DNA of 64,000 nt, from the sequence record PP712906.1. One strand, given 5' to 3'. Of the stretch, positions 14,611 through 31,217 are shown piece by piece. The notes beneath the pieces were generated by a model. It saw only the letters and a list, made by a program, of their open reading frames with translations, was not told where the DNA came from and ran no database searches. Both the position numbers and the translations under genes were made by a program. How positions within the stretch are numbered: position 1 is the stretch's first letter; every line of letters begins with the position of its first letter.

Positions 14611-14636
14611 GAGGGGCTTTTTAGCCCCTCTAAATA
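14611..14636 (+). promoter_or_regulatory. GC-rich hairpin abutting a late promoter (TCTAAATA 14629-14636) for gene 19
   Basis: GAGGGGCT-TTTT-AGCCCCTC, then TAAATA. No U-tract follows. Confidence 0.65.
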
Positions 14637-17411: not shown

Positions 17412-18053
17412 ATGGAATTACAACTCTTAATTGAAGACTGGGGCGTATCGAGCTATGCAACTGCTGAGACTGGCGAAAAGCCGCTTGTTGAAGCGAAAAT
17501 GCCCGCTGAAAAAGGCGGCGACTTGTACATTGAGGGTATTTTCATGCAATCGAATGTCGTGAACCGTAATGGTCGCAGATATCCGAAAAAAGTCATGGAA
17601 AATGCCGTATCTAAATACATTCAAGAGCAAGTCAAGACGAATCAAGCGTTGGGCGAGCTTAATCACCCTAGCCGTTCGAACGTCGATCCTGCTGAAGCTG
17701 CAATTCGTATCACTGAGTTGTGGTGGGATGGCGATAACGTAATGGGAAAAGCAATCGTACTAAATACTCCGAAGGGACAAATCGTACGCGGTCTAATCGA
17801 AGGCGGTTGGGTTCCGGGCGTAAGTTCACGAGGTCTTGGTTCAGTTAAGCAAGTTGACGGGATCAACGAAGTACAAGACTTTCGTCTTACAGTTGGTGTA
17901 GATGTAGTGTGGGGTCCGAGTGCGCCTGCTGCATACGTTAAGCCAGTAACTGAGTCAAATGAAGCTGCTAAATCAGTAAAAACAGAAGAAATTACAGAAA
18001 GTAATGACGCTGAGTTTGCGAAACTAGCGGAAACGTTAAAAACTCTCTTATAA
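17412..18053 (+). CDS. 21: Prohead protease gp21
   Basis: YIEGIFMQSNVVNRNGRRYP...ALGELNHP...GWVPGVSSRGLGS...DVVWGPSAP. Confidence 0.97.
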   Translation: MELQLLIEDWGVSSYATAETGEKPLVEAKMPAEKGGDLYIEGIFMQSNVVNRNGRRYPKKVMENAVSKYIQEQVKTNQALGELNHPSRSNVDPAEAAIRITELWWDGDNVMGKAIVLNTPKGQIVRGLIEGGWVPGVSSRGLGSVKQVDGINEVQDFRLTVGVDVVWGPSAPAAYVKPVTESNEAAKSVKTEEITESNDAEFAKLAETLKTLL

Positions 18054-20598: not shown

Positions 20599-21696
20599 TT
20601 ATAGACTATGCAAATAATTGTAGGCGATACTGACTCGCTTATCTTCTAGTGCTTCGCCGTATGCAGGTCCCGGTTCAACGTCAACTTTGACATTTCGAGT
20701 TAGTTCAATTAACTCAATAAGCATTTTACGCTTCACTTCATCTTTTACTTGCGATAATGCAACTTCGAACGGTAGACCTTCTTTGTATGCACCTAGTTTA
20801 CGTAAAACAATGACAATCGTTTCATCAAATGCATTAGCAACGTTTAGACTCATCAAGATCTCAGATGCTTTATCAAATTGCTTAGTCGCACCGAATTTTC
20901 GAGTGTAACGATTACGATGGTCGAATGATGCCCATTTAGCAATTAGCTGCACGTCTTCACACTTGAAAGGCATACGATTGTAGAACTTCAATTCAAGCAA
21001 TTCACGGGCGCTTGGTACTGCACAGAACCCAATTTGACCTAAAAATGCGAAGTACATGTGCGCGTCTTTCTCAGACAGTGCTTTTTGAGTCTCTAGCCAC
21101 ACACGTTCTTTAGGTAGATTCTCAAGCATGCCGTCATTGATCATCTTCTTGCATAGCTCAATCGTTTCTTCTGCGACTGTAAATCCCATACTGTAGTAAC
21201 GAGCATAGAAACGAGCAACACGCAGAACACGCAATGGATCTTCAGCAAATGCTTCAGTCGTGTGGCGAAGAATCTTATTTTTCAAGTCGTCTAGACCCCC
21301 GTACGGGTCGATGACATCATCAGTCGAGCCCCACATAAACAGACTATTTGGTGTCATGTCTGGTATAGCCATTGAGTTGATAGTCAGATCTCGACGAGAT
21401 AAGTCGTCTTCTAACGTAACACCGTCAGTCGTGAAAGTGAAGTCAGTAGTTTTACCGCCAGTGCTACGCTCTACACGAGCAAGCGCGACTTCATTACCGT
21501 CTTTATCAAGCCAAACAGGGAAATCAGCGCCGATTGGTTCACCGTACATAGCCATCATTTGCTCATGCGTACAACCGGTTACGACGTAATCAATGTCTTT
21601 CGGGAATCTAGACCAACCCTCGACATGTTTCAGAATAGAGTCGCGTACTGCGCCACCGACAATGTATTTTTTCATCAAGTTAAGATTCGCTTTCAT
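20599..21696 (-). CDS. cca: Class II tRNA nucleotidyltransferase (CCA-adding enzyme)
   Basis: YIVGGAVRD...KDIDYVV, DFPV, EVALARVER, DLSRRDLTINSMA, DPYGGLDDL, AFAEDPLRVLRVARF. Confidence 0.93.
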   Translation of the reverse strand: MKANLNLMKKYIVGGAVRDSILKHVEGWSRFPKDIDYVVTGCTHEQMMAMYGEPIGADFPVWLDKDGNEVALARVERSTGGKTTDFTFTTDGVTLEDDLSRRDLTINSMAIPDMTPNSLFMWGSTDDVIDPYGGLDDLKNKILRHTTEAFAEDPLRVLRVARFYARYYSMGFTVAEETIELCKKMINDGMLENLPKERVWLETQKALSEKDAHMYFAFLGQIGFCAVPSARELLELKFYNRMPFKCEDVQLIAKWASFDHRNRYTRKFGATKQFDKASEILMSLNVANAFDETIVIVLRKLGAYKEGLPFEVALSQVKDEVKRKMLIELIELTRNVKVDVEPGPAYGEALEDKRVSIAYNYLHSL

Positions 21697-23609: not shown

Positions 23610-24101
23610 ATGAGTCAATTGAAAACACACGCAGATTCACTAACTAAAGCCGAACTAGATGAGTTTGCACAAGAATATTACGGCATCGAGCTTGATCGTC
23701 GTAAATCAAAAGGCGCTATGACTAAAGCTCTTCTTGAAGGCGCTGAAGGTAAAACTCCGCTGAAGCAACTTCCATGGGAAGAACTTCTTCTTGAAGAAAC
23801 ACCTGAGCCAGTCGTAGAGACGAAAGTCAAAGAAGAATCCGAAGCTGTTAAAGTTGAGCTTCCGAAAGATGATTCTTTCGAGCCTCTACCACTACCTTTC
23901 AAACGCGGTCATGAACGTTTCATGATTGCGTCTGATTCTGCCGTTGAATCGGCAAAGGGAATTGTTGCAGGTAAAGCCTCGCTTGACGATGTGCTTGCAT
24001 CAGATCTTCGCGTAGTTAAATCAATCTTGCATTATGTCGAGCAAGACGGCAAGGTGCTAGTGCGTGAAACTCGCAATAGTCAATTCATCACAATTAAATA
24101 G
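23610..24101 (+). CDS. inh: Inh-family inhibitor of prohead protease, copy A
   Basis: ELDEFAQEYYGIELDRRKS and C-terminal LHYVEQDGKVLVRETRNSQFITIK, close to T4 Inh YYINRDGSVLIRETRNSSFVTLK. Confidence 0.8.
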   Translation: MSQLKTHADSLTKAELDEFAQEYYGIELDRRKSKGAMTKALLEGAEGKTPLKQLPWEELLLEETPEPVVETKVKEESEAVKVELPKDDSFEPLPLPFKRGHERFMIASDSAVESAKGIVAGKASLDDVLASDLRVVKSILHYVEQDGKVLVRETRNSQFITIK

Positions 24102-24500: not shown

Positions 24501-25685
24501 CTAAGCGACGAACGCTACGCGCTGTACGATTGTCTGTTTTTCGTCGCGAAACTCGTCGTGAGCTTTTACAGTCGCTTTTACAGTTACTGTAGTGCCGTTC
24601 TCAATCGTTTCGCCGTCTTTGTCACGTAGGCGAGTTGAGCCAAACCACACGATTAGGTTGTTTTGTCCGTCGCGGAAATGATGAATGAACGTGTCGCCAT
24701 AGTAGCCTTCAGATACGATGACTTTTTCAAGTGTCACATTGAAGTTTTCACGTTTTTTGATAGTACCGACGTGCTCAGATTCTGGTAACTCTGCTTTACG
24801 TTCAGCTTCGCGTTTAGCTAGAATCTCACGCTCTTTTGCTTTGTTAAAAGCCAAGATAGCTGCTGCAATGTAACCAGTTTGCTTGTACTCGATGAATGGA
24901 GCAGCACATGACGCGATAACATTGTGCATGAAATCGTTCGTCGCTTCTTGAGTTGCAACCCATTCTAAGATCTCTTTTGCTTGCTCTTCACACTTATCGT
25001 AATCGTATTCAGCAAGCATTGCATCACGCTCTTCACGCAGTGCTGGTGAACCAACATTAATCATGTCGATAACCCACTGACGAGTCACGCCACCACCATG
25101 GTAACAGCCTTTGTGCTTAACATACATAGCAGCCCATGTAACAATCTGAAGTGCGTTGTATGAGATTTTACGAGAACCACCACCCCATGACTCTTCATCG
25201 CCGAAATCAGCGATTGCAGTGTAGAACGTAGCTAGTGAGTCGATAGATTTAGTTGGTAGGTAGTATTTCAAGCATGAACCACCGACGCGCATTTCTTCTT
25301 TCGTATCTTCATTTTGAATGACGTAAGTTACATTACGCTGACGCTTAGAGTTGCAGTGATCGCAAGTTGTGTCACCTAGAAGATGACGATGATTAGTCTC
25401 GTTGTTAGAGCGAACAAGATTTGTTGCGTGGTCAAGTTGAGTCAAGAAAGACCAACCTTTAGTTGACGGGTATTCACCGCGAATAGTAACATCAACGTAA
25501 TATTCACGATATTTTTGATGATTGATTATAATGACTTCTGAGTACACTTCACCGAACTCAAATGTGATTTCAGCAACACCAAGACGTTTTGCAATCTTGT
25601 TAGTAGATGCAACACGCGCTTCGAACTCGCTCATGTAGATTGATTTGATTGTGTAAGTGTTTTCGAATTTGTTTAGTGAAGTCAT
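24501..25685 (-). CDS. Conserved phage early protein with a CxxC...C zinc site and a C-terminal OB-fold-like domain (394 aa)
   Basis: TCDHCNSKRQR...VGGSCL. C-terminus HVGTIKKRENFNVTL...HHFRDGQNNLIVWF...VTVKATVKAH. Confidence 0.75.
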   Translation of the reverse strand: MTSLNKFENTYTIKSIYMSEFEARVASTNKIAKRLGVAEITFEFGEVYSEVIIINHQKYREYYVDVTIRGEYPSTKGWSFLTQLDHATNLVRSNNETNHRHLLGDTTCDHCNSKRQRNVTYVIQNEDTKEEMRVGGSCLKYYLPTKSIDSLATFYTAIADFGDEESWGGGSRKISYNALQIVTWAAMYVKHKGCYHGGGVTRQWVIDMINVGSPALREERDAMLAEYDYDKCEEQAKEILEWVATQEATNDFMHNVIASCAAPFIEYKQTGYIAAAILAFNKAKEREILAKREAERKAELPESEHVGTIKKRENFNVTLEKVIVSEGYYGDTFIHHFRDGQNNLIVWFGSTRLRDKDGETIENGTTVTVKATVKAHDEFRDEKQTIVQRVAFVA

Positions 25686-25767: not shown

Positions 25768-25792
25768 AAAAAAAGCGCAAAAATGCGCTTTT
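25768..25792 (-). terminator. Terminator after the 25795 gene
   Basis: AAAAGCGCA-AAAA-TGCGCTTTT with a 7-A run that is the U-tract on the minus strand. Confidence 0.8.
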
Positions 25793-25794
25793 CT

Positions 25795-26757
25795 TTATTT
25801 GTCGAGCATGAATATTGTCACATCATCTTGAGATTCAAACGATGGTTTGTAACCGTATTGCGGTCCAAGACGATTGAATAAACGCTTGTACAGACTGATT
25901 CGTTTCTCGTTTTCATCTTTGATTGATGTTGCAATTGTCTCACAGTTGTATTTCTTAGCAAAGTTCACTGTTTCATTGACTACCGTTGCAAATACTTGCA
26001 TTGGGTTTTCAGAAGCAGTCAGATCATTAGTCCAACCACTCTCACCGCGAACTTGAAAATGCACTTCAACAGCTTTTACAAACTCAGGCGGATTGAAATT
26101 GAAAATCTCATCATTACTACCCCAATCAATGCCTCGCGGTATTAGAATGACGCGATAAACTTGTTTACCTATCTGAAATAGACCCTCAATTGGTTTCTTG
26201 TTACCCACGGGAACGTCGCCTTTCGGGTACATGACTTTAGCGGGCTTGTCAAGTGATTCCGTCAAATTAACCGAAGACAGCCACTCGCGCCATGTCTTTT
26301 TATTTCCGATTTTCGCAAACGGAATATCGTCATGATCTAGCCACTGTGCCGAGCGATCATACGACTGAGAAGTATCAAATCCGCGGTAATCATCGCCAAC
26401 CCATAGCCATTTATGATGCCAGATTTGATTGACTTGACGTGGCTTAGAAACAGCACCGTCTTTGTAAGTGATCATCATACCCGCGGCTGGTTCTTGTACA
26501 GTGTCAAATTCAACTGAGTCATAGAACGCAACGCCACCTTTTTTATAGTCAATTCTGACAATGTTCGGTGTGAATTGCGGATTTGCTATTGATACTTGAG
26601 TACGAACATCAGCAACCATTTGCTTGAACTCGTCAGGAACATAGTCAACGTGAACATATAATGAACCGCCAATGTCTTTACCAACGCCCCATTTGCTGCG
26701 TTTTACTGCACTACCTTTTCGGGTTTTTAATGTAGCGCGTTCAAAAATTATGCTCAT
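25795..26757 (-). CDS. Two-domain late protein (320 aa); N-domain resembles the accessory domain of phosphorothioation-associated putative methyltransferases
   Basis: VGKDIGGSLYVH, FDTVQEP, IWHHKWLWVGDDY, IGNKKTW, then linker NLTE/SLD and a second domain ending RISLYKRL. Confidence 0.7.
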   Translation of the reverse strand: MSIIFERATLKTRKGSAVKRSKWGVGKDIGGSLYVHVDYVPDEFKQMVADVRTQVSIANPQFTPNIVRIDYKKGGVAFYDSVEFDTVQEPAAGMMITYKDGAVSKPRQVNQIWHHKWLWVGDDYRGFDTSQSYDRSAQWLDHDDIPFAKIGNKKTWREWLSSVNLTESLDKPAKVMYPKGDVPVGNKKPIEGLFQIGKQVYRVILIPRGIDWGSNDEIFNFNPPEFVKAVEVHFQVRGESGWTNDLTASENPMQVFATVVNETVNFAKKYNCETIATSIKDENEKRISLYKRLFNRLGPQYGYKPSFESQDDVTIFMLDK

Positions 26758-26759
26758 TA

Positions 26760-27353
26760 TTACCTCGTTGCTGCGTTTGTGATATTTCTGATCATACGCA
26801 CTGCGAATTGAGTGTCGCCTGTCATGGCTGCTGACGCCGCCTTATCAACGTAAAACGTGCTATCTTCGATCATGTTCAAGTGATGATAGATTTCACGAAA
26901 ATCGTGACGGTCGAACTCTTTAGTCGTGAATCGAAGTGCACCTGCTTTCTTGTCATCATCGTGAACACGTTTGTATTCATCAATGACTCGAATCATTTCA
27001 CTAGCGTATTTCTTCATTTCCATGTTATCGAGCTTCAAACGTTTTGCTGCTTGAATTACCTCGTCACGAGGACGCTCAAGTTCAATCGCATCTTTAAGAA
27101 TGTTCAGACTGTGAATGGTATTCACTGCTGCCTTTTCCATTTGTAATTTGTGATCTTCAAGCGTTCGATTGTGCTTTCTCAATTCACCGGTTGCGGTAGC
27201 ACTTGCAATCAAGCCAGCAAAAACGCCCCAGAACCCGCCTTTACGCTGCAAGCGTTTCTTAACTTCGCCTTTCGAACCTGCTGTAATTGCTTGAAATTGC
27301 GCCCATTTTCCGCTTTTTCTTGCTTTATCCATTTCTGTTAAAAATTCAATCAT
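26760..27353 (-). CDS. Late basic helical protein, candidate internal head protein (197 aa)
   Basis: Starts MIEFLTE, directly after a minus-strand late promoter. Confidence 0.7.
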   Translation of the reverse strand: MIEFLTEMDKARKSGKWAQFQAITAGSKGEVKKRLQRKGGFWGVFAGLIASATATGELRKHNRTLEDHKLQMEKAAVNTIHSLNILKDAIELERPRDEVIQAAKRLKLDNMEMKKYASEMIRVIDEYKRVHDDDKKAGALRFTTKEFDRHDFREIYHHLNMIEDSTFYVDKAASAAMTGDTQFAVRMIRNITNAATR

Positions 27354-27378: not shown

Positions 27379-27386
27379 TATTTAGA
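27379..27386 (-). promoter_or_regulatory. Late promoter variant TCTAAATA (minus strand)
   Basis: Plus strand TATTTAGA, 25 nt upstream of the 27353 start and just after a terminator. Confidence 0.7.
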
Positions 27387-27394
27387 CGTAAACG

Positions 27395-27420
27395 AAAAAA
27401 GGGCGACCGAAGTCACCCTT
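27395..27420 (-). terminator. Terminator after the 27436 gene
   Basis: Minus strand AAGGGTGAC-TTCG-GTCGCCC-TTTTTT. Confidence 0.88.
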
Positions 27421-27435
27421 TAACAGTTGGTTAAA

Positions 27436-28908: not shown

Positions 28909-29415
28909 TTACCTCAGATAAGTGAAGCTATTTGAATTGCGTTCATGAACTAACAATTCACCGCGAAGCTTAACCCAATGTTCAATTGTCTTTAGATCGT
29001 GCGAGTCTCGACGACCGATGTGCCAATCATGAATGATTTCAGCCGATAACGGTTGATATAATTCATCACCGCGACGATATGTAGGCATCCATTTAGGTTT
29101 GAATTCATCTTCGACCTTAATCGCATCAACTGGATCGACTAGAACTACGTCAACACGTTCTAAATGCTCGTGAGATTCAACGTCAACGAATTCAGTGTCT
29201 TTGGCATCTGATTCATCGACTAAATCACAACGAGTCTCAGAATCAATTACAGCGCATTCTAGCGGTACTTCGGTTTGAGATACGATTTCATGAGCGATAA
29301 GCTCTTCGATCATTTTGCTCTTGGTAAGTGATTTGTCAAGTTCGATGTCATAATGTTTCAACGCGAATTCAGCGACAGCTCGCTTAGTCTGTTTCTTTAG
29401 ATATTCAGTAATCAT
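28909..29415 (-). CDS. inh: Inh-family protein, copy B, in the T4-syntenic position opposite uvsW (168 aa)
   Basis: VAEFALKHYDIELDKSLTKSKMIEEL and C-terminal IEHWVKLRGELLVHERNSNSFTYLR. Start after AAGGA. Confidence 0.7.
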   Translation of the reverse strand: MITEYLKKQTKRAVAEFALKHYDIELDKSLTKSKMIEELIAHEIVSQTEVPLECAVIDSETRCDLVDESDAKDTEFVDVESHEHLERVDVVLVDPVDAIKVEDEFKPKWMPTYRRGDELYQPLSAEIIHDWHIGRRDSHDLKTIEHWVKLRGELLVHERNSNSFTYLR

Positions 29416-29423
29416 ATTATTCC

Positions 29424-29630
29424 TTAGCAATTAATAGTGACCCATTCGTTTTGGTTCAAGTCAAAGAATGTCAGAGTATCGACACAACGTTCATTCTTCC
29501 TCATTTCTTCGCGATTCGTTTCAAGAACAGGCAAATAATGCTTGCACAATGTGGCGTGATATTGGCACCCGTCGCGTTCTAATTTAAGACATCCTTGCGT
29601 CATACAGGACATCATTTCTTCTCGTGTCAT
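29424..29630 (-). CDS. Hypothetical protein (68 aa)
   Basis: ORF with a GAGG site directly after a minus-strand late promoter. Confidence 0.6.
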   Translation of the reverse strand: MTREEMMSCMTQGCLKLERDGCQYHATLCKHYLPVLETNREEMRKNERCVDTLTFFDLNQNEWVTINC

Positions 29631-29693: not shown

Positions 29694-31217
29694 ATGACAG
29701 ATATTAAAATTGAGTACTTCGATGAGAGTTATGCGAGAGTCGTAGCCGAGCCAAGCATTACTCATGAAATGATTGATTACTTTTCATTTCTAACTGACGG
29801 GTACAAATTCAACCCTAAATTTAAAATGGGCATATGGGATGGCAAGATTCGACTAATGACGTATCAAGGTCTATTACCATACGGTCTAGTCGGTCAAGCT
29901 AAAGCGTTTGCATCAAACATGATGTACACGATTGAAACTGATCCACTACTTGATCCGATTGAGAAAATTTCTCGTGAAGATTTTGAAGCATGGGTTGCTT
30001 CTCTTGATATTTACGGTGGCAGCAATAAAATTAGCCCGTACTGGTATCAAATGGATTCAGTATTTCACGGTATTAACAATCAGCACAGCCTTTTGAATCT
30101 ACCAACATCTGCGGGTAAGTCGCTGATTCAGTCACTTTTGACACGTTGGTTTTTAGAAAATCACGAAGCTCAGAAAGTGTTGATTATCGTCCCAACGACT
30201 GCACTAGTTCAGCAAATGCGTGACGACTTTTTAGACTATCGCTTGTTTGAACATGGTGACATATATCAAATTCGAGGTGGCGTAGATAGAGACGCAATCG
30301 GAGATTGTCGTATTGTTGTTTCAACATGGCAATCGGCTGTTAAGCAAGATAAAGCATGGTTCGATCAGTTCGGTATGCTTCTAGTCGATGAATGTCACTT
30401 AGCAACGGGTAAGTCGCTTGACGGCATCATCAAAAAAATGACCAGTTGTGAATACAAAATCGGTCTTACTGGTTCACTTAGAGACGGTAAAGCTAATATT
30501 CTACAGTACGTGGGTTCATTTGGTGATATTTTCAGACCTGTATCGACTGCACAGCTAATGGAAGAAGGGCAAGTAACTGATCTGAAGATCAATTGCTTGA
30601 TGCTTGAATATCCTCAGCCACTACGTGATGAAATGAAAGGCAGTTCATATCAAGAAGAAATGAAATTCATTCTTGAGAACAAACAGCGAAATCGTTACCT
30701 GATTAAGCTTGCTCATCATCTGAGTGCTAAGAAAGGCGAGAACACGCTATTACTGTTCAAGAACATCAAACATGGTAAATTGCTTTACGAAGCATTGAAG
30801 AAAGTATACGACCCTGAGAAAGTGTTCTACGTATCAGGTGAAACTAAGACTGACGACCGTACACATGTTAAGAAAATTGCAGAAGATATTGACGGGGCAG
30901 TTATTGTCGCATCATACGGTGTATTCTCGACTGGTATCAGTATCAAGAAACTACACAACGTAATTTTCGCACACCCGACAAAGAGTAAGATCATCAACTT
31001 ACAGTCGATTGGTCGTATTCTACGTAAGCACGGTTCGAAAGTTACTGCGAAGCTGTTTGACATTATCGACAACTTAGCGATCAAGCCGAAACGAGCTAAC
31101 GCTAAGAAGCCGTATACGCATGTCAATTATACTATGAAGCATGGGATGCAGCGTATTGAGCTTTACAACCAAGAAGAGTTCAAGTACGCAGTCAAAAAAG
31201 TTGACCTTGCTGCATAA
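29694..31217 (+). CDS. uvsW: SF2 DNA/RNA-DNA helicase UvsW
   Basis: YWYQMD Q-motif, LPTSAGKS Walker A, LVDECH, GLTGSL, FSTGISIKKLHNVIF, LQSIGRILR. Confidence 0.97.
   Translation: MTDIKIEYFDESYARVVAEPSITHEMIDYFSFLTDGYKFNPKFKMGIWDGKIRLMTYQGLLPYGLVGQAKAFASNMMYTIETDPLLDPIEKISREDFEAWVASLDIYGGSNKISPYWYQMDSVFHGINNQHSLLNLPTSAGKSLIQSLLTRWFLENHEAQKVLIIVPTTALVQQMRDDFLDYRLFEHGDIYQIRGGVDRDAIGDCRIVVSTWQSAVKQDKAWFDQFGMLLVDECHLATGKSLDGIIKKMTSCEYKIGLTGSLRDGKANILQYVGSFGDIFRPVSTAQLMEEGQVTDLKINCLMLEYPQPLRDEMKGSSYQEEMKFILENKQRNRYLIKLAHHLSAKKGENTLLLFKNIKHGKLLYEALKKVYDPEKVFYVSGETKTDDRTHVKKIAEDIDGAVIVASYGVFSTGISIKKLHNVIFAHPTKSKIINLQSIGRILRKHGSKVTAKLFDIIDNLAIKPKRANAKKPYTHVNYTMKHGMQRIELYNQEEFKYAVKKVDLAA

Follow-up and report, generated by a model that had tools for sequence, protein, structure and literature searches.

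What does the two-domain protein encoded among the head genes of a KVP40-like Vibrio phage do, and what does its likeness to bacterial proteins associated with DNA phosphorothioation mean? We addressed this question in a window of 64,000 nucleotides from sequence record PP712906.1 (the whole stretch of DNA that was analysed, here called the 64-kb window), in which a putatively late gene with an ATG start encodes 320 amino acids. A sequence-only reading of this DNA had noted a resemblance to TIGR04096-type putative methyltransferases, had called for a profile comparison, and had proposed a protein that enters the head, is processed by gp21 in a linker between two domains, is injected, and acts on or mimics Dnd/Ssp phosphorothioate defence. 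Its observation of the resemblance was confirmed and its interpretation was partly supported, as set out below.

Gene and operon

The 320-aa gene is the second of a two-gene operon that has a terminator-like hairpin on either side. The features of the operon are as follows.

25795..26757, minus strand: gene for the two-domain protein (KVP40.0371 homologue, PHROG 16075)
26760..27353, minus strand: partner gene lying upstream and coupled to it in translation (197 aa, PHROG 16422, KVP40.0372 homologue)
27398..27421, minus strand: terminator-like hairpin, end of the preceding transcription unit
25768..25795, minus strand: terminator-like hairpin directly 3' of the 320-aa gene, overlapping the first base of the ORF coordinates
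27379..27386, minus strand: late-promoter-like variant TCTAAATA, 25 nt before the first ATG of the operon

The start codon of the 320-aa ORF lies 2 nt past the stop of the upstream ORF and is preceded by the ribosome-binding site GAGG. The protein is 97% identical to KVP40.0371, and homologues of its gene are conserved across 51 Vibrio Schizotequatrovirus records; the partner gene is always found 5' of the gene carrying the N-terminal domain. Head genes, two inh paralogues and uvsW surround the operon, which lies in the variable hoc-inh region. The window also encodes a gp21 homologue (17412..18053) and, 4 kb from the 320-aa gene, a CCA-adding enzyme (20599..21696). A search of the 64-kb window for paralogues of the N-terminal or C-terminal domain found none.

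The gene had been placed under a late promoter; a variant, TCTAAATA, lies in front of the operon, and an exact TATAAATA is absent from the minus strand of the window. Copies of TCTAAATA are intergenic in 5 of 9 cases in the window, where they stand 14–34 nt upstream of gene starts. From the match to the consensus, it is plausible that a late promoter precedes the two-gene operon.

The N-terminal domain and its relatives

The strings on which the resemblance to TIGR04096 had been based, VGKDIGGSLYVH, NIVRIDY, FDTVQEP, IWHHKWLWVGDDY, IGNKKTWREWL and VNLTE/SLD, followed by a second domain, are all present in the translation in the same order. The N-terminal domain and its invariant H-H-K core map to the following positions.

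26272..26736, minus strand: N-terminal domain, aa ~8–162, a homologue of the non-methyltransferase domain that is repeated in TIGR04096 proteins
26410..26418, minus strand: H114-H115-K116, invariant core of the IWHHKWLWV motif

Searched alone, the window protein found no match in NCBIfam at E≤10, and single-sequence scans of Pfam, NCBIfam and PDB sequences returned nothing for the N-terminal domain. When profiles were compared, hhalign aligned the domain with the N-terminal copies of four annotated TIGR04096 proteins at 98.7% probability (E 3.3e-16, 148 columns), and 24 of 43 relatives matched the TIGR04096 model itself, at profile positions ~315–468 of 478 (best E 3.9e-10). Solo relatives score 12–29 bits on this model, compared with 510 bits for a true member and an NCBIfam cut-off of 150 bits. 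At the level of sequence, these comparisons confirm that the likeness to the TIGR04096 domain is well beyond chance. The domain is also homologous to a methyltransferase-linked domain in phage polyvalent proteins. The sequence-only reading had further noted that no SAM-binding motif is visible in the phage protein, and this proved accurate: no methyltransferase family was matched, and a profile of the partner methyltransferase found nothing in the window or in phage relatives.

All of the residues that are invariant in the family are kept in the window protein (G26, K27, P90, H114, H115, K116, W117, V120, Y124, F127 and S136). The H114-H115-K116 core aligns with the H-R-K of the NPP[IV]LHRKE motif of TIGR04096 proteins, which is their best-conserved stretch and is conserved as strongly as their SAM motif. 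Polar and aromatic residues make up the conserved set of the domain (G-K, Y-x-H, F-D, P, H-[HR]-K, I-G, W), and the polar residues K27, H36, H114 and K116 are common to phage, polyvalent and bacterial members.

The AlphaFold model of the domain has a pLDDT of 95.8, and Foldseek found no structural neighbour for it in the PDB (best E 0.37, TM≤0.25). In a viral library its sole match was part of a phage protein of 1232 aa that itself belongs to the family. A profile built from 43 relatives likewise found no match among PDB sequences, and Pfam holds no model for the family. Three candidate assignments were rejected. The H-x-K in the domain suggested a PLD/HKD-type phosphodiesterase, but the acidic residue is one position off in its spacing, and the fold search returned no PLD structure. 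A PUA-like reader had no fold match. The sulfur-binding domain (SBD) of the ScoMcrA type is a phosphorothioate reader with a solved fold, and it too was absent from the PDB fold matches of the domain.

We then considered the bacterial relatives, which number at least 561 species for the TIGR04096 form. Each of these proteins has the domain twice, once on each side of a class-I SAM methyltransferase. A Dnd or Ssp modification gene is found at most 10 kb from the TIGR04096 gene in 40 of 64 bacterial loci (Dnd genes in 22, Ssp genes in 18), including loci of Vibrio metoecus, V. satsumensis, V. halioticoli and Photobacterium, while 16 of the 64 have no phosphorothioation gene within that distance. 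The link of the bacterial relatives to phosphorothioation, on which the earlier proposal had relied, is upheld by these neighbourhoods, several of them in Vibrio. Dnd or Ssp homologues were sought in the 64-kb window and in phage relatives, and none was found.

At E≤1e-3, the family as a whole comprises 1009 clusters. A search of 50,697 cultured phage records found the domain in the KVP40 group only. Of 105 multidomain proteins, 65 have a related SAM methyltransferase directly next to the domain, as do 34 of the 37 giant phage polyvalent proteins. The latter, of 2000–6450 aa and from uncultured phages, also contain LPD38, SNF2, an Eco57I-type methylase, ART-PolyVal and DarA_C; two relatives (P0024 and P0028) combine several unrelated effector domains with polyvalent-specific domains, as polyvalent proteins do, and the gene of one giant protein lies between tail/DGR genes and lysis genes. 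Two solo relatives on metagenomic contigs have uninformative neighbours (unknown phage or plasmid genes, integrases and DarA_C). A GNAT also occurs with the domain in two further members of the family. No named relative emerged from a word-based search whose query was a domain alignment headed by a 504-aa protein.

The C-terminal half and the linker

The remainder of the protein contains the following features.

25798..26202, minus strand: C-terminal domain, aa ~186–320, with a GNAT-like fold in the predicted structure
26203..26271, minus strand: interdomain linker, aa 163–185
26257..26265, minus strand: L165-T166-E167, proposed gp21-type cleavage motif
26740..26748, minus strand: I4-F5-E6, another [LI]xE, located at the very N-terminus and invariant among orthologues

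The second domain had been recognized from the translation, but its GNAT-like character, which emerged from Foldseek, had been missed. With the full-length model as query, the top match was 4nxy (E 9.5e-4, probability 1.00), and GNATs made up almost the whole list of 50 matches. The fold matches of the C-terminal domain include the AtaT-type toxins 6ajm and 7f37, GNAT toxins that act on aminoacyl-tRNA. The modelled domain has neither the first two helices nor the glycine-rich CoA loop of GNATs: the loop before the long helix (T247..N251) contains no glycine in any orthologue, and the CoA pyrophosphate loop Q/R-x-x-G-x-G/A is missing. A motif-B-like R..LY.R stretch is conserved among orthologues. 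In Pfam, the domain reached only DUF6934 (E 0.012, below its cut-off) and no GNAT model; a search with the C-terminal domain alone gave no match. The assignment to GNATs stays structure-based because the full-length orthologue profile gave no GNAT match in PDB sequences. With a pLDDT of 66–95 and a shallow alignment behind this half of the model, the C-terminal half looks like a minimal GNAT-like fold.

Conservation among orthologues is far lower in the C-terminal than in the N-terminal domain. The C-terminal domain is swapped for a divergent version in the VH7D/nt-1 group and is missing in 1.081.O and D479; in D479, a relative of it adjoins an RNA ligase gene and tRNA genes. This variability bears on an explanation in which the protein has no enzymatic activity and serves the head as a structural or scaffolding accessory, and its likeness to TIGR04096 proteins reflects a shared ancient fold only. 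A variable or dispensable C-terminal domain, a position among head genes and two inh paralogues, and expression that is likely late from the promoter match would all suit such a role. However, K27, H36, H114 and K116 are conserved as in a ligand-binding or catalytic site, and the domain occurs mostly in non-structural contexts across the family; we regard a head accessory as very unlikely.

The fold matches to toxins acting on aminoacyl-tRNA are in line with a different explanation, in which the N-terminal domain would bind an RNA end or tRNA and the GNAT-like domain would modify it. Such an enzyme would act unpackaged, with the tRNAs and CCA-adding enzyme of the phage, and might, for example, repair or protect tRNAs. 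Fusions in the family point the same way: the domain is joined to a CCA-adding enzyme and HD (P0055; PolyA_pol is present in 2 of 65 proteins scanned), to YafQ/RelE RNases (P0014 and P0167), to NFACT-R (2 members) and to Tpt1/KptA. So do the CCA-adding enzyme gene of the window, its counterpart in phage D479, which abuts the solo-domain gene, and the D479 neighbours of the C-terminal relative. Among solved structures, the partner methyltransferase matches the tRNA methyltransferase Trm9 best, but this match is weak (E 1.6e-4) and of a generic class-I type. RNA-enzyme fusions account for only about 7 of 105, and polyvalent-type fusions do not require functional coupling. The gene order near the CCA-adding enzyme amounts to a single observation because it is shared by descent within one phage genus, and the bacterial relatives associate with DNA-modification genes. 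On balance, an RNA or tRNA enzyme seems to us rather unlikely, while being the most serious of the alternatives.

The proposal of packaging and cleavage had drawn on the late promoter and on the LxE of the linker, LxE being the T4 gp21 cleavage consensus. The LTE motif is indeed present in the linker, within the block with the lowest confidence inside the model (aa 161–170, pLDDT 68), and L165 and E167 are invariant in 9 orthologues. The count of such motifs carries no weight by itself because 2 are observed in the 320-aa protein and 1.8 are expected, and the linker LxE may simply be the end of the domain because the solo versions in 1.081.O and D479 keep it 2–3 residues before the stop codon. 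The N-terminal I4-F5-E6 would be compatible with a short cleaved propeptide. An N-terminal [LI]xE is found also in the upstream partner and in the gp21, gp22, gp23 and inh-like ORFs of the window; within the first 10 residues, the motif occurs in 16 of its 82 ORFs.

Packaging, gp21 cleavage and injection of the phage protein, as read from these motifs, are conjecture. The full proposal, that a head-packaged protein is cut at LTE/S, injected and then neutralizes or mimics Dnd/Ssp phosphorothioate defence, gains from several lines of evidence: the homology to phosphorothioation-associated proteins, the strong Dnd/Ssp neighbourhood of bacterial relatives, Vibrio included, the late-promoter-like site, the invariant [LI]xE at the N-terminus and in the low-confidence linker, the same start in the partner and head ORFs, and the gp21 homologue in the window. 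The domain is moreover common in polyvalent proteins, for which PMC5512222 argues delivery by virions. On the other side, motifs are as frequent as composition predicts, 16 of the 82 ORFs of the window have an [LI]xE near their start, and cleavage would be purposeless in solo versions that end 2–3 residues later. The literature searched yielded no virion proteome of a KVP40-type phage. Together with the comparisons to head-internal and anti-Dnd proteins given below, these points lead us to consider the full proposal improbable.

Proposed role and comparison with known systems

Our preferred explanation, to which we give an even chance, is that the N-terminal domain is the recognition or ligand partner of a group-transfer enzyme and that the phage protein is a host-conflict effector with a GNAT-like domain replacing the methyltransferase. 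The first module (aa ~8–162) would provide target recognition or ligand binding, and the place held by the methyltransferase in relatives would be taken by the GNAT-like module. The most specific candidate is the ligand of the bacterial relatives, which would be nucleic acid with a phosphorothioate or another backbone modification, or a component of the phosphorothioation machinery; RNA or tRNA is a serious alternative ligand. Late expression would permit head loading and trimming at the two [LI]xE sites, which is again conjecture.

Some observations sit uneasily with an effector built on a ligand partner. These are the RNA-enzyme fusions, the 16 of 64 TIGR04096 loci free of phosphorothioation genes, the absence of such genes and of the partner methyltransferase from the window and the phage relatives, the score of the window protein under every NCBIfam threshold, and a GNAT assignment that no sequence profile backs and that goes with a missing glycine-rich CoA loop.

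A bolder version holds that the ~160-aa domain is a reader or processor, of new fold, of phosphorothioate- or thio-modified nucleic acid, that bacteria pair it with a methyltransferase beside Dnd and Ssp writers and phages do so inside virion-delivered polyvalent proteins, and that the methyltransferase-free, GNAT-fused version of KVP40-type phages, possibly loaded into the head, blunts Vibrio phosphorothioate immunity. We consider this a long shot. If the domain does read or act on phosphorothioate-modified nucleic acid, it would form a second class of reader, new in structure, and would hint at a phage response to phosphorothioate immunity that is widespread.

The 320-aa protein is a lead worth following. 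An abundant domain, which forms ~1000 clusters and occurs in at least 561 bacterial species as the TIGR04096 form and in dozens of phage giants, is still unnamed and without a Pfam model. It joins three things that had been unconnected: a phosphorothioation-linked methyltransferase, a standard polyvalent-protein module and a putatively late gene of a cultured T4-like phage. The TIGR04096 methyltransferase, for its part, accompanies two unrelated systems that write phosphorothioates, Dnd and Ssp. Because the domain occurs only there among the cultured phage records, the KVP40 group is the natural place to learn its role.

The closest known proteins are those of TIGR04096 (dnd_rel_methyl, 'DNA phosphorothioation-associated putative methyltransferase' in NCBIfam), such as WP_316704580.1 of Piscinibacter and QWV06574.1 of Pseudoalteromonas. 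They share with the phage protein the ~160-aa domain and the order G-K, Y-x-H, x-V-K, F-D..P, H-[HR]-K, I-G....W. Unlike them, the phage protein is without the SAM methyltransferase core (motif I DYGCGxG[DEG]D) and has a GNAT-like domain instead; it is encoded in a head-gene region devoid of phosphorothioation genes and scores far under the 150-bit cut-off.

In phage T4, IPI, IPII, IPIII and Alt are gp21-processed head-internal proteins, Alt being an enzyme that the head delivers. The T4 proteins are expressed late and carry short [LI]xE motifs at the N-terminus and internally; the 320-aa protein has such motifs and a late-promoter-like site, but no search that we ran detected sequence or profile similarity between them, which counts against the packaging proposal. 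GNAT acyltransferases, among which AcrVA5 is an anti-CRISPR acetyltransferase, have in common with the phage protein the fold predicted for aa ~186–320, whereas the phage domain is without helices 1–2 and the pyrophosphate loop.

Polyvalent proteins, of which DarB and DarA of P1 are the archetypes, are argued to accompany the DNA and to act early, as are the solo versions of their domains (Iyer, Burroughs, Anand, de Souza, Aravind 2017, PMC5512222). The window protein contains the same domain as some of them, but it has two domains only, with neither an LPD nor a processing peptidase. Neither the domain nor its methyltransferase partner was found in the methyltransferase and LPD passages of that article (PMC5512222).

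Finally, the only phage protein described as acting against DndBCDE-FGH is JSS1_004, which is made early and combines a kinase with a shutoff domain (PMC12345140). Its lack of relation to the window protein in sequence and architecture is a further point against the packaged anti-phosphorothioate proposal, although the two would share Dnd as their target system if that earlier idea is right.

Gene, surroundings and two modules

Over the 3 kb around the gene at 25795..26757, identity is 100% to Vibrio phage TCU-VP03-AIR1 and 93% to KVP40 (Straboviridae, Schizotequatrovirus). The encoded protein is 97% identical to KVP40.0371, annotated there as "hypothetical protein", and its translation contains all of the peptide strings named in the sequence-only reading, in the order claimed. 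The gene lies in a variable region with head genes on one side and uvsW on the other, within a minus-strand cluster bracketed by two inh paralogues, and was present in 51 phage records, every one a Vibrio phage of Schizotequatrovirus.

Features of the window
~15.2-20.5 kb: head genes gp20, gp21, gp22, gp23
20599..21696, minus: CCA-adding tRNA nucleotidyltransferase gene, directly after gp23 (PDB sequence match 1vfg, E 1.5e-16)
23610..24101, plus, and 28909..29430, minus: inh paralogues (prohead-protease inhibitor, PHROG 8608)
24501..25685, minus: 394-aa ORF, PHROG 2319, with a cysteine-rich segment
25795..26757, minus: gene under study, 320 aa, ATG start, GAGG ribosome-binding site
26760..27353, minus: upstream partner ORF, 197 aa, PHROG 16422, 100% identical to KVP40.0372
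27421-27398 and 25795-25768: terminator-like hairpins bracketing the gene pair
29694..31217: uvsW
9526, 14629, 27379 (minus), 29662 (minus), 50735: intergenic TCTAAATA copies, 14-34 nt upstream of gene starts

Phages 1.081.O and D479 have a separate gene encoding the first ~170 residues only, and identity in the VH7D/nt-1 group exceeds 60% over the first half but is only ~30% over the second. The protein therefore consists of two separable modules, a conserved core at the N-terminus (the N-domain, residues ~8-162) and a variable second module.

The full-length model (pLDDT 87.6, pTM 0.59) dips in confidence to 68 at residues 161-170, the linker, and its Foldseek matches in the PDB were almost exclusively GNAT acyltransferases (top match 4nxy, E 9.5e-4, probability 1.00; target-normalised TM-scores up to 0.44). 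The N-domain model matches nothing there, so the GNAT matches are assigned to residues ~186-320, for which the predicted structure supports a GNAT-like fold. The modelled C-domain has no counterpart of the canonical fold's first two helices, its loop at the CoA-pyrophosphate site of GNATs is free of glycines, and its second helix carries a conserved R..LY.R stretch. Weak sequence matches were to DUF6934 (E 0.012), PHROG 6387 (7e-10) and PHROG 27801 (6e-5), none with an assigned function, and a profile of the full-length orthologues had no GNAT match among PDB sequences. In D479, a C-domain relative makes up the N-terminal half of another protein, 259 aa long and of PHROG 6387 type (L006:3465-4244), adjoining an RNA ligase gene and three tRNA genes; a CCA-adding enzyme gene abuts the solo N-domain gene of the same phage.

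The N-domain family and its likeness to TIGR04096

The N-domain family is large and unnamed. An exhaustive search of 1.84 billion representative proteins with a six-relative profile returned 1009 clusters at E<=1e-3 and 814 at E<=1e-10, in which the domain either stands by itself in a protein of ~160-180 aa or is embedded in one of up to 6451 aa. The window's own copy matched neither Pfam nor NCBIfam. Of 50,697 cultured phage records, only those of the 51 KVP40-type phages yielded the domain. A further 10 Vibrionaceae plasmids or chromids (Vibrio/Photobacterium; for example L005:7974-8426) carry solo copies, and the one inspected has a phage-plasmid-like setting with a Ref nuclease, an integrase and many small unknown genes. 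In 43 solo members G26, K27, P90, H114, H115, K116, W117, V120, Y124, F127 and S136 (window numbering) are invariant, and R20, Y34, H36, Y39, F78, F84, D85, E89, W139 and G151 nearly so. The AlphaFold2 model from their alignment is very confident (pLDDT 95.8, pTM 0.89); Foldseek found no similar solved structure (best E 0.37, TM-scores <=0.25), the sole match in the viral library was another member of the same family, and the sequence profile had no match in the PDB.

The proposed resemblance to TIGR04096, the NCBIfam family of DNA phosphorothioation-associated putative methyltransferases, proved real. Scanned singly against NCBIfam, 24 of the 43 members matched TIGR04096 (best E 3.9e-10) with no other family recurring, and the matches span the whole N-domain and occupy positions ~315-468 in the C-terminal part of the 478-position profile. 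An annotated member reached by tblastn of plasmids, Piscinibacter WP_316704580.1 (850 aa), matches TIGR04096 with 510 bits across residues 179-671 and has an additional N-terminal copy of the N-domain with identical motifs in identical order. Seven further plasmid-borne members likewise carry this ~180-residue extension. In annotated proteins that have it (L004:11995-14547, L011:8434-10506, L012:8443-10482 and L013:1909-4527), the extension is not covered as such by the 478-position model; it duplicates that model's own C-terminal domain and is the better conserved of the two copies. Four N-terminal copies aligned to the 43-member alignment with 98.7% probability (E 3.3e-16, 148 columns), the first-copy stretch NPP[IV]LHRKE falling on phage IWHHKW; this stretch and the SAM motif are the most conserved peptides of the bacterial family. 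The N-terminal copy and the C-terminal match together give a TIGR04096-type layout of domain, class-I SAM methyltransferase, domain, and by sequence comparison the phage module is homologous to the flanking domain.

Methyltransferase partners and phosphorothioation genes

The usual partner of the N-domain is a METHYLTRANSFERASE. Methyltransf_23 was the commonest Pfam co-resident in 65 larger family members (15), followed by Methyltransf_12 (4), and an iterated profile built from the flanks of the N-domain found a related methyltransferase immediately N-terminal to it in 29 proteins and C-terminal in 36. It stands beside the domain in 65 of 105 multidomain proteins and in 34 of the 37 with at least 2000 aa. 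The profile also recognises the Piscinibacter methyltransferase (E 5e-11), and the best solved match of the partner methyltransferase is Trm9 (E 1.6e-4), a generic class-I match. The sequence-only reading had seen no SAM-binding motif; the protein itself has no SAM methyltransferase, and the partner profile found none in any of the 51 KVP40-type phages with the N-domain.

The giants with an N-domain are phage-type polyvalent proteins, with LPD38, SNF2 helicase, Eco57I-type methylase, ART-PolyVal, LPD3 and DarA_C domains; one, the 4871-aa P0028 (L014:10001-24616), which has the methyltransferase-domain pair, is placed between a diversity-generating retroelement (DGR)/tail region (Mtd_N, RVT_1) and a holin-amidase lysis cassette on a 52-kb phage contig. 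Proteins of this type have been argued to enter along with the DNA and to act early, and LPD38 to be confined to phage-type ones (Iyer et al., PMC5512222); the methyltransferase and LPD passages of that paper do not describe the N-domain or its methyltransferase partner.

When one genome per species was scanned, at least 561 had a TIGR04096 relative. The best 64 loci with at least 12 kb of sequence were searched with DndB-E from a Pseudoalteromonas locus and with Ssp-type queries from two other loci (DUF4007, large ATPase, PAPS-reductase-like, cysteine desulfurase). The relatives do adjoin phosphorothioation genes: at least two of DndBCDE lay within 10 kb at 22 loci and Ssp-type B or C genes at 18, while 8 had a cysteine desulfurase or PAPS-reductase gene only and 16 had none of these genes. 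Positive loci include Vibrio metoecus, V. satsumensis, V. halioticoli, V. variabilis and Photobacterium. This association with two differently built writer systems suggests that the modification itself, and not a single protein partner, is what the TIGR04096 protein relates to. A literature search found no paper on the family. On Azospirillum and Microvirga plasmids (L016:2158-7473, L018:1639-6630) the TIGR04096 gene follows a ~5-kb FtsK/SpoIIIE-domain gene, with no phosphorothioation genes within 8 kb, which may be a second, different context. The N-domain habitually adjoins a SAM methyltransferase: next to phosphorothioate writers in bacteria, and as part of polyvalent proteins in phages.

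In such company the N-domain would provide target or ligand recognition to a group-transfer enzyme. The bacterial neighbourhoods make phosphorothioate-bearing nucleic acid the most specific candidate ligand. The main alternative is RNA or tRNA, because of the small fusions and the CCA-adding enzyme gene nearby at 20599..21696: among the rarer partners, a CCA-adding enzyme with an HD domain (fused to the N-domain in family member P0055), YafQ/RelE, NFACT-R and Tpt1 are RNA-related. Partners of other kinds are GNAT, DUF5662, ParB_N and NlpC/P60.

Probable late operon, LxE motifs and comparison with known systems

The gene starts 2 nt past the stop of the 197-aa ORF. All relatives examined, solo forms included, have that ORF ahead of the N-domain gene. 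The two are always translationally coupled, even where the GNAT-like half is missing; the 197-aa product, with a hydrophobic stretch at residues 40-58 and the N-terminus MIEFLTE, matched no family or structure. The ORF at 24501..25685, whose C-terminal part is common to three other PHROGs, is placed after the gene's terminator and has its own sigma-70-like site. Of the late promoter claimed earlier, the exact TATAAATA is absent from the minus strand of the window, but TCTAAATA stands 25 nt ahead of the operon's first ATG (27379, minus). Copies in the window are mostly intergenic (TCTAAATA 5/9, TATAAATA 5/6) and lie 14-42 nt upstream of gene starts, as at 14629 ahead of gp19 (start 14651), making late transcription likely; judged by its placement, TCTAAATA behaves as a second late-promoter form.

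The protein contains exactly two [LI]xE motifs, IFE (4-6) and LTE (165-167), where 1.8 are expected. Both are invariant in nine orthologues, two of which have extra copies inserted in the linker. A motif within the first ten residues also occurs in the gp68-like, gp21, gp22, gp23 and inh-like ORFs and the 197-aa partner, and in 16 of 82 window ORFs overall. Cleavage and packaging are possible on these motifs; since solo N-domain versions stop two or three residues beyond the same LxE, LTE may simply be the end of the N-domain. No search returned a likeness to known head-internal proteins. The full earlier proposal, of a protein packaged, cleaved, injected and directed against Dnd/Ssp, requires four conjectural steps, and we consider it improbable. 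We favour instead a conflict effector whose GNAT-like module would stand in for the methyltransferase.

The product of 25795..26757 is a phage protein of a probable late operon that joins a TIGR04096-type flanking domain to a predicted GNAT-like domain. The described anti-Dnd phage protein JSS1_004 is an early kinase and shutoff protein, to which no search returned any likeness. The second half resembles GNAT acyltransferases by predicted fold only. One domain is shared with TIGR04096 proteins, but the phage protein lacks their methyltransferase, score and neighbourhood and is not a member. Nor is it a polyvalent protein, although its N-domain is a common part of theirs.
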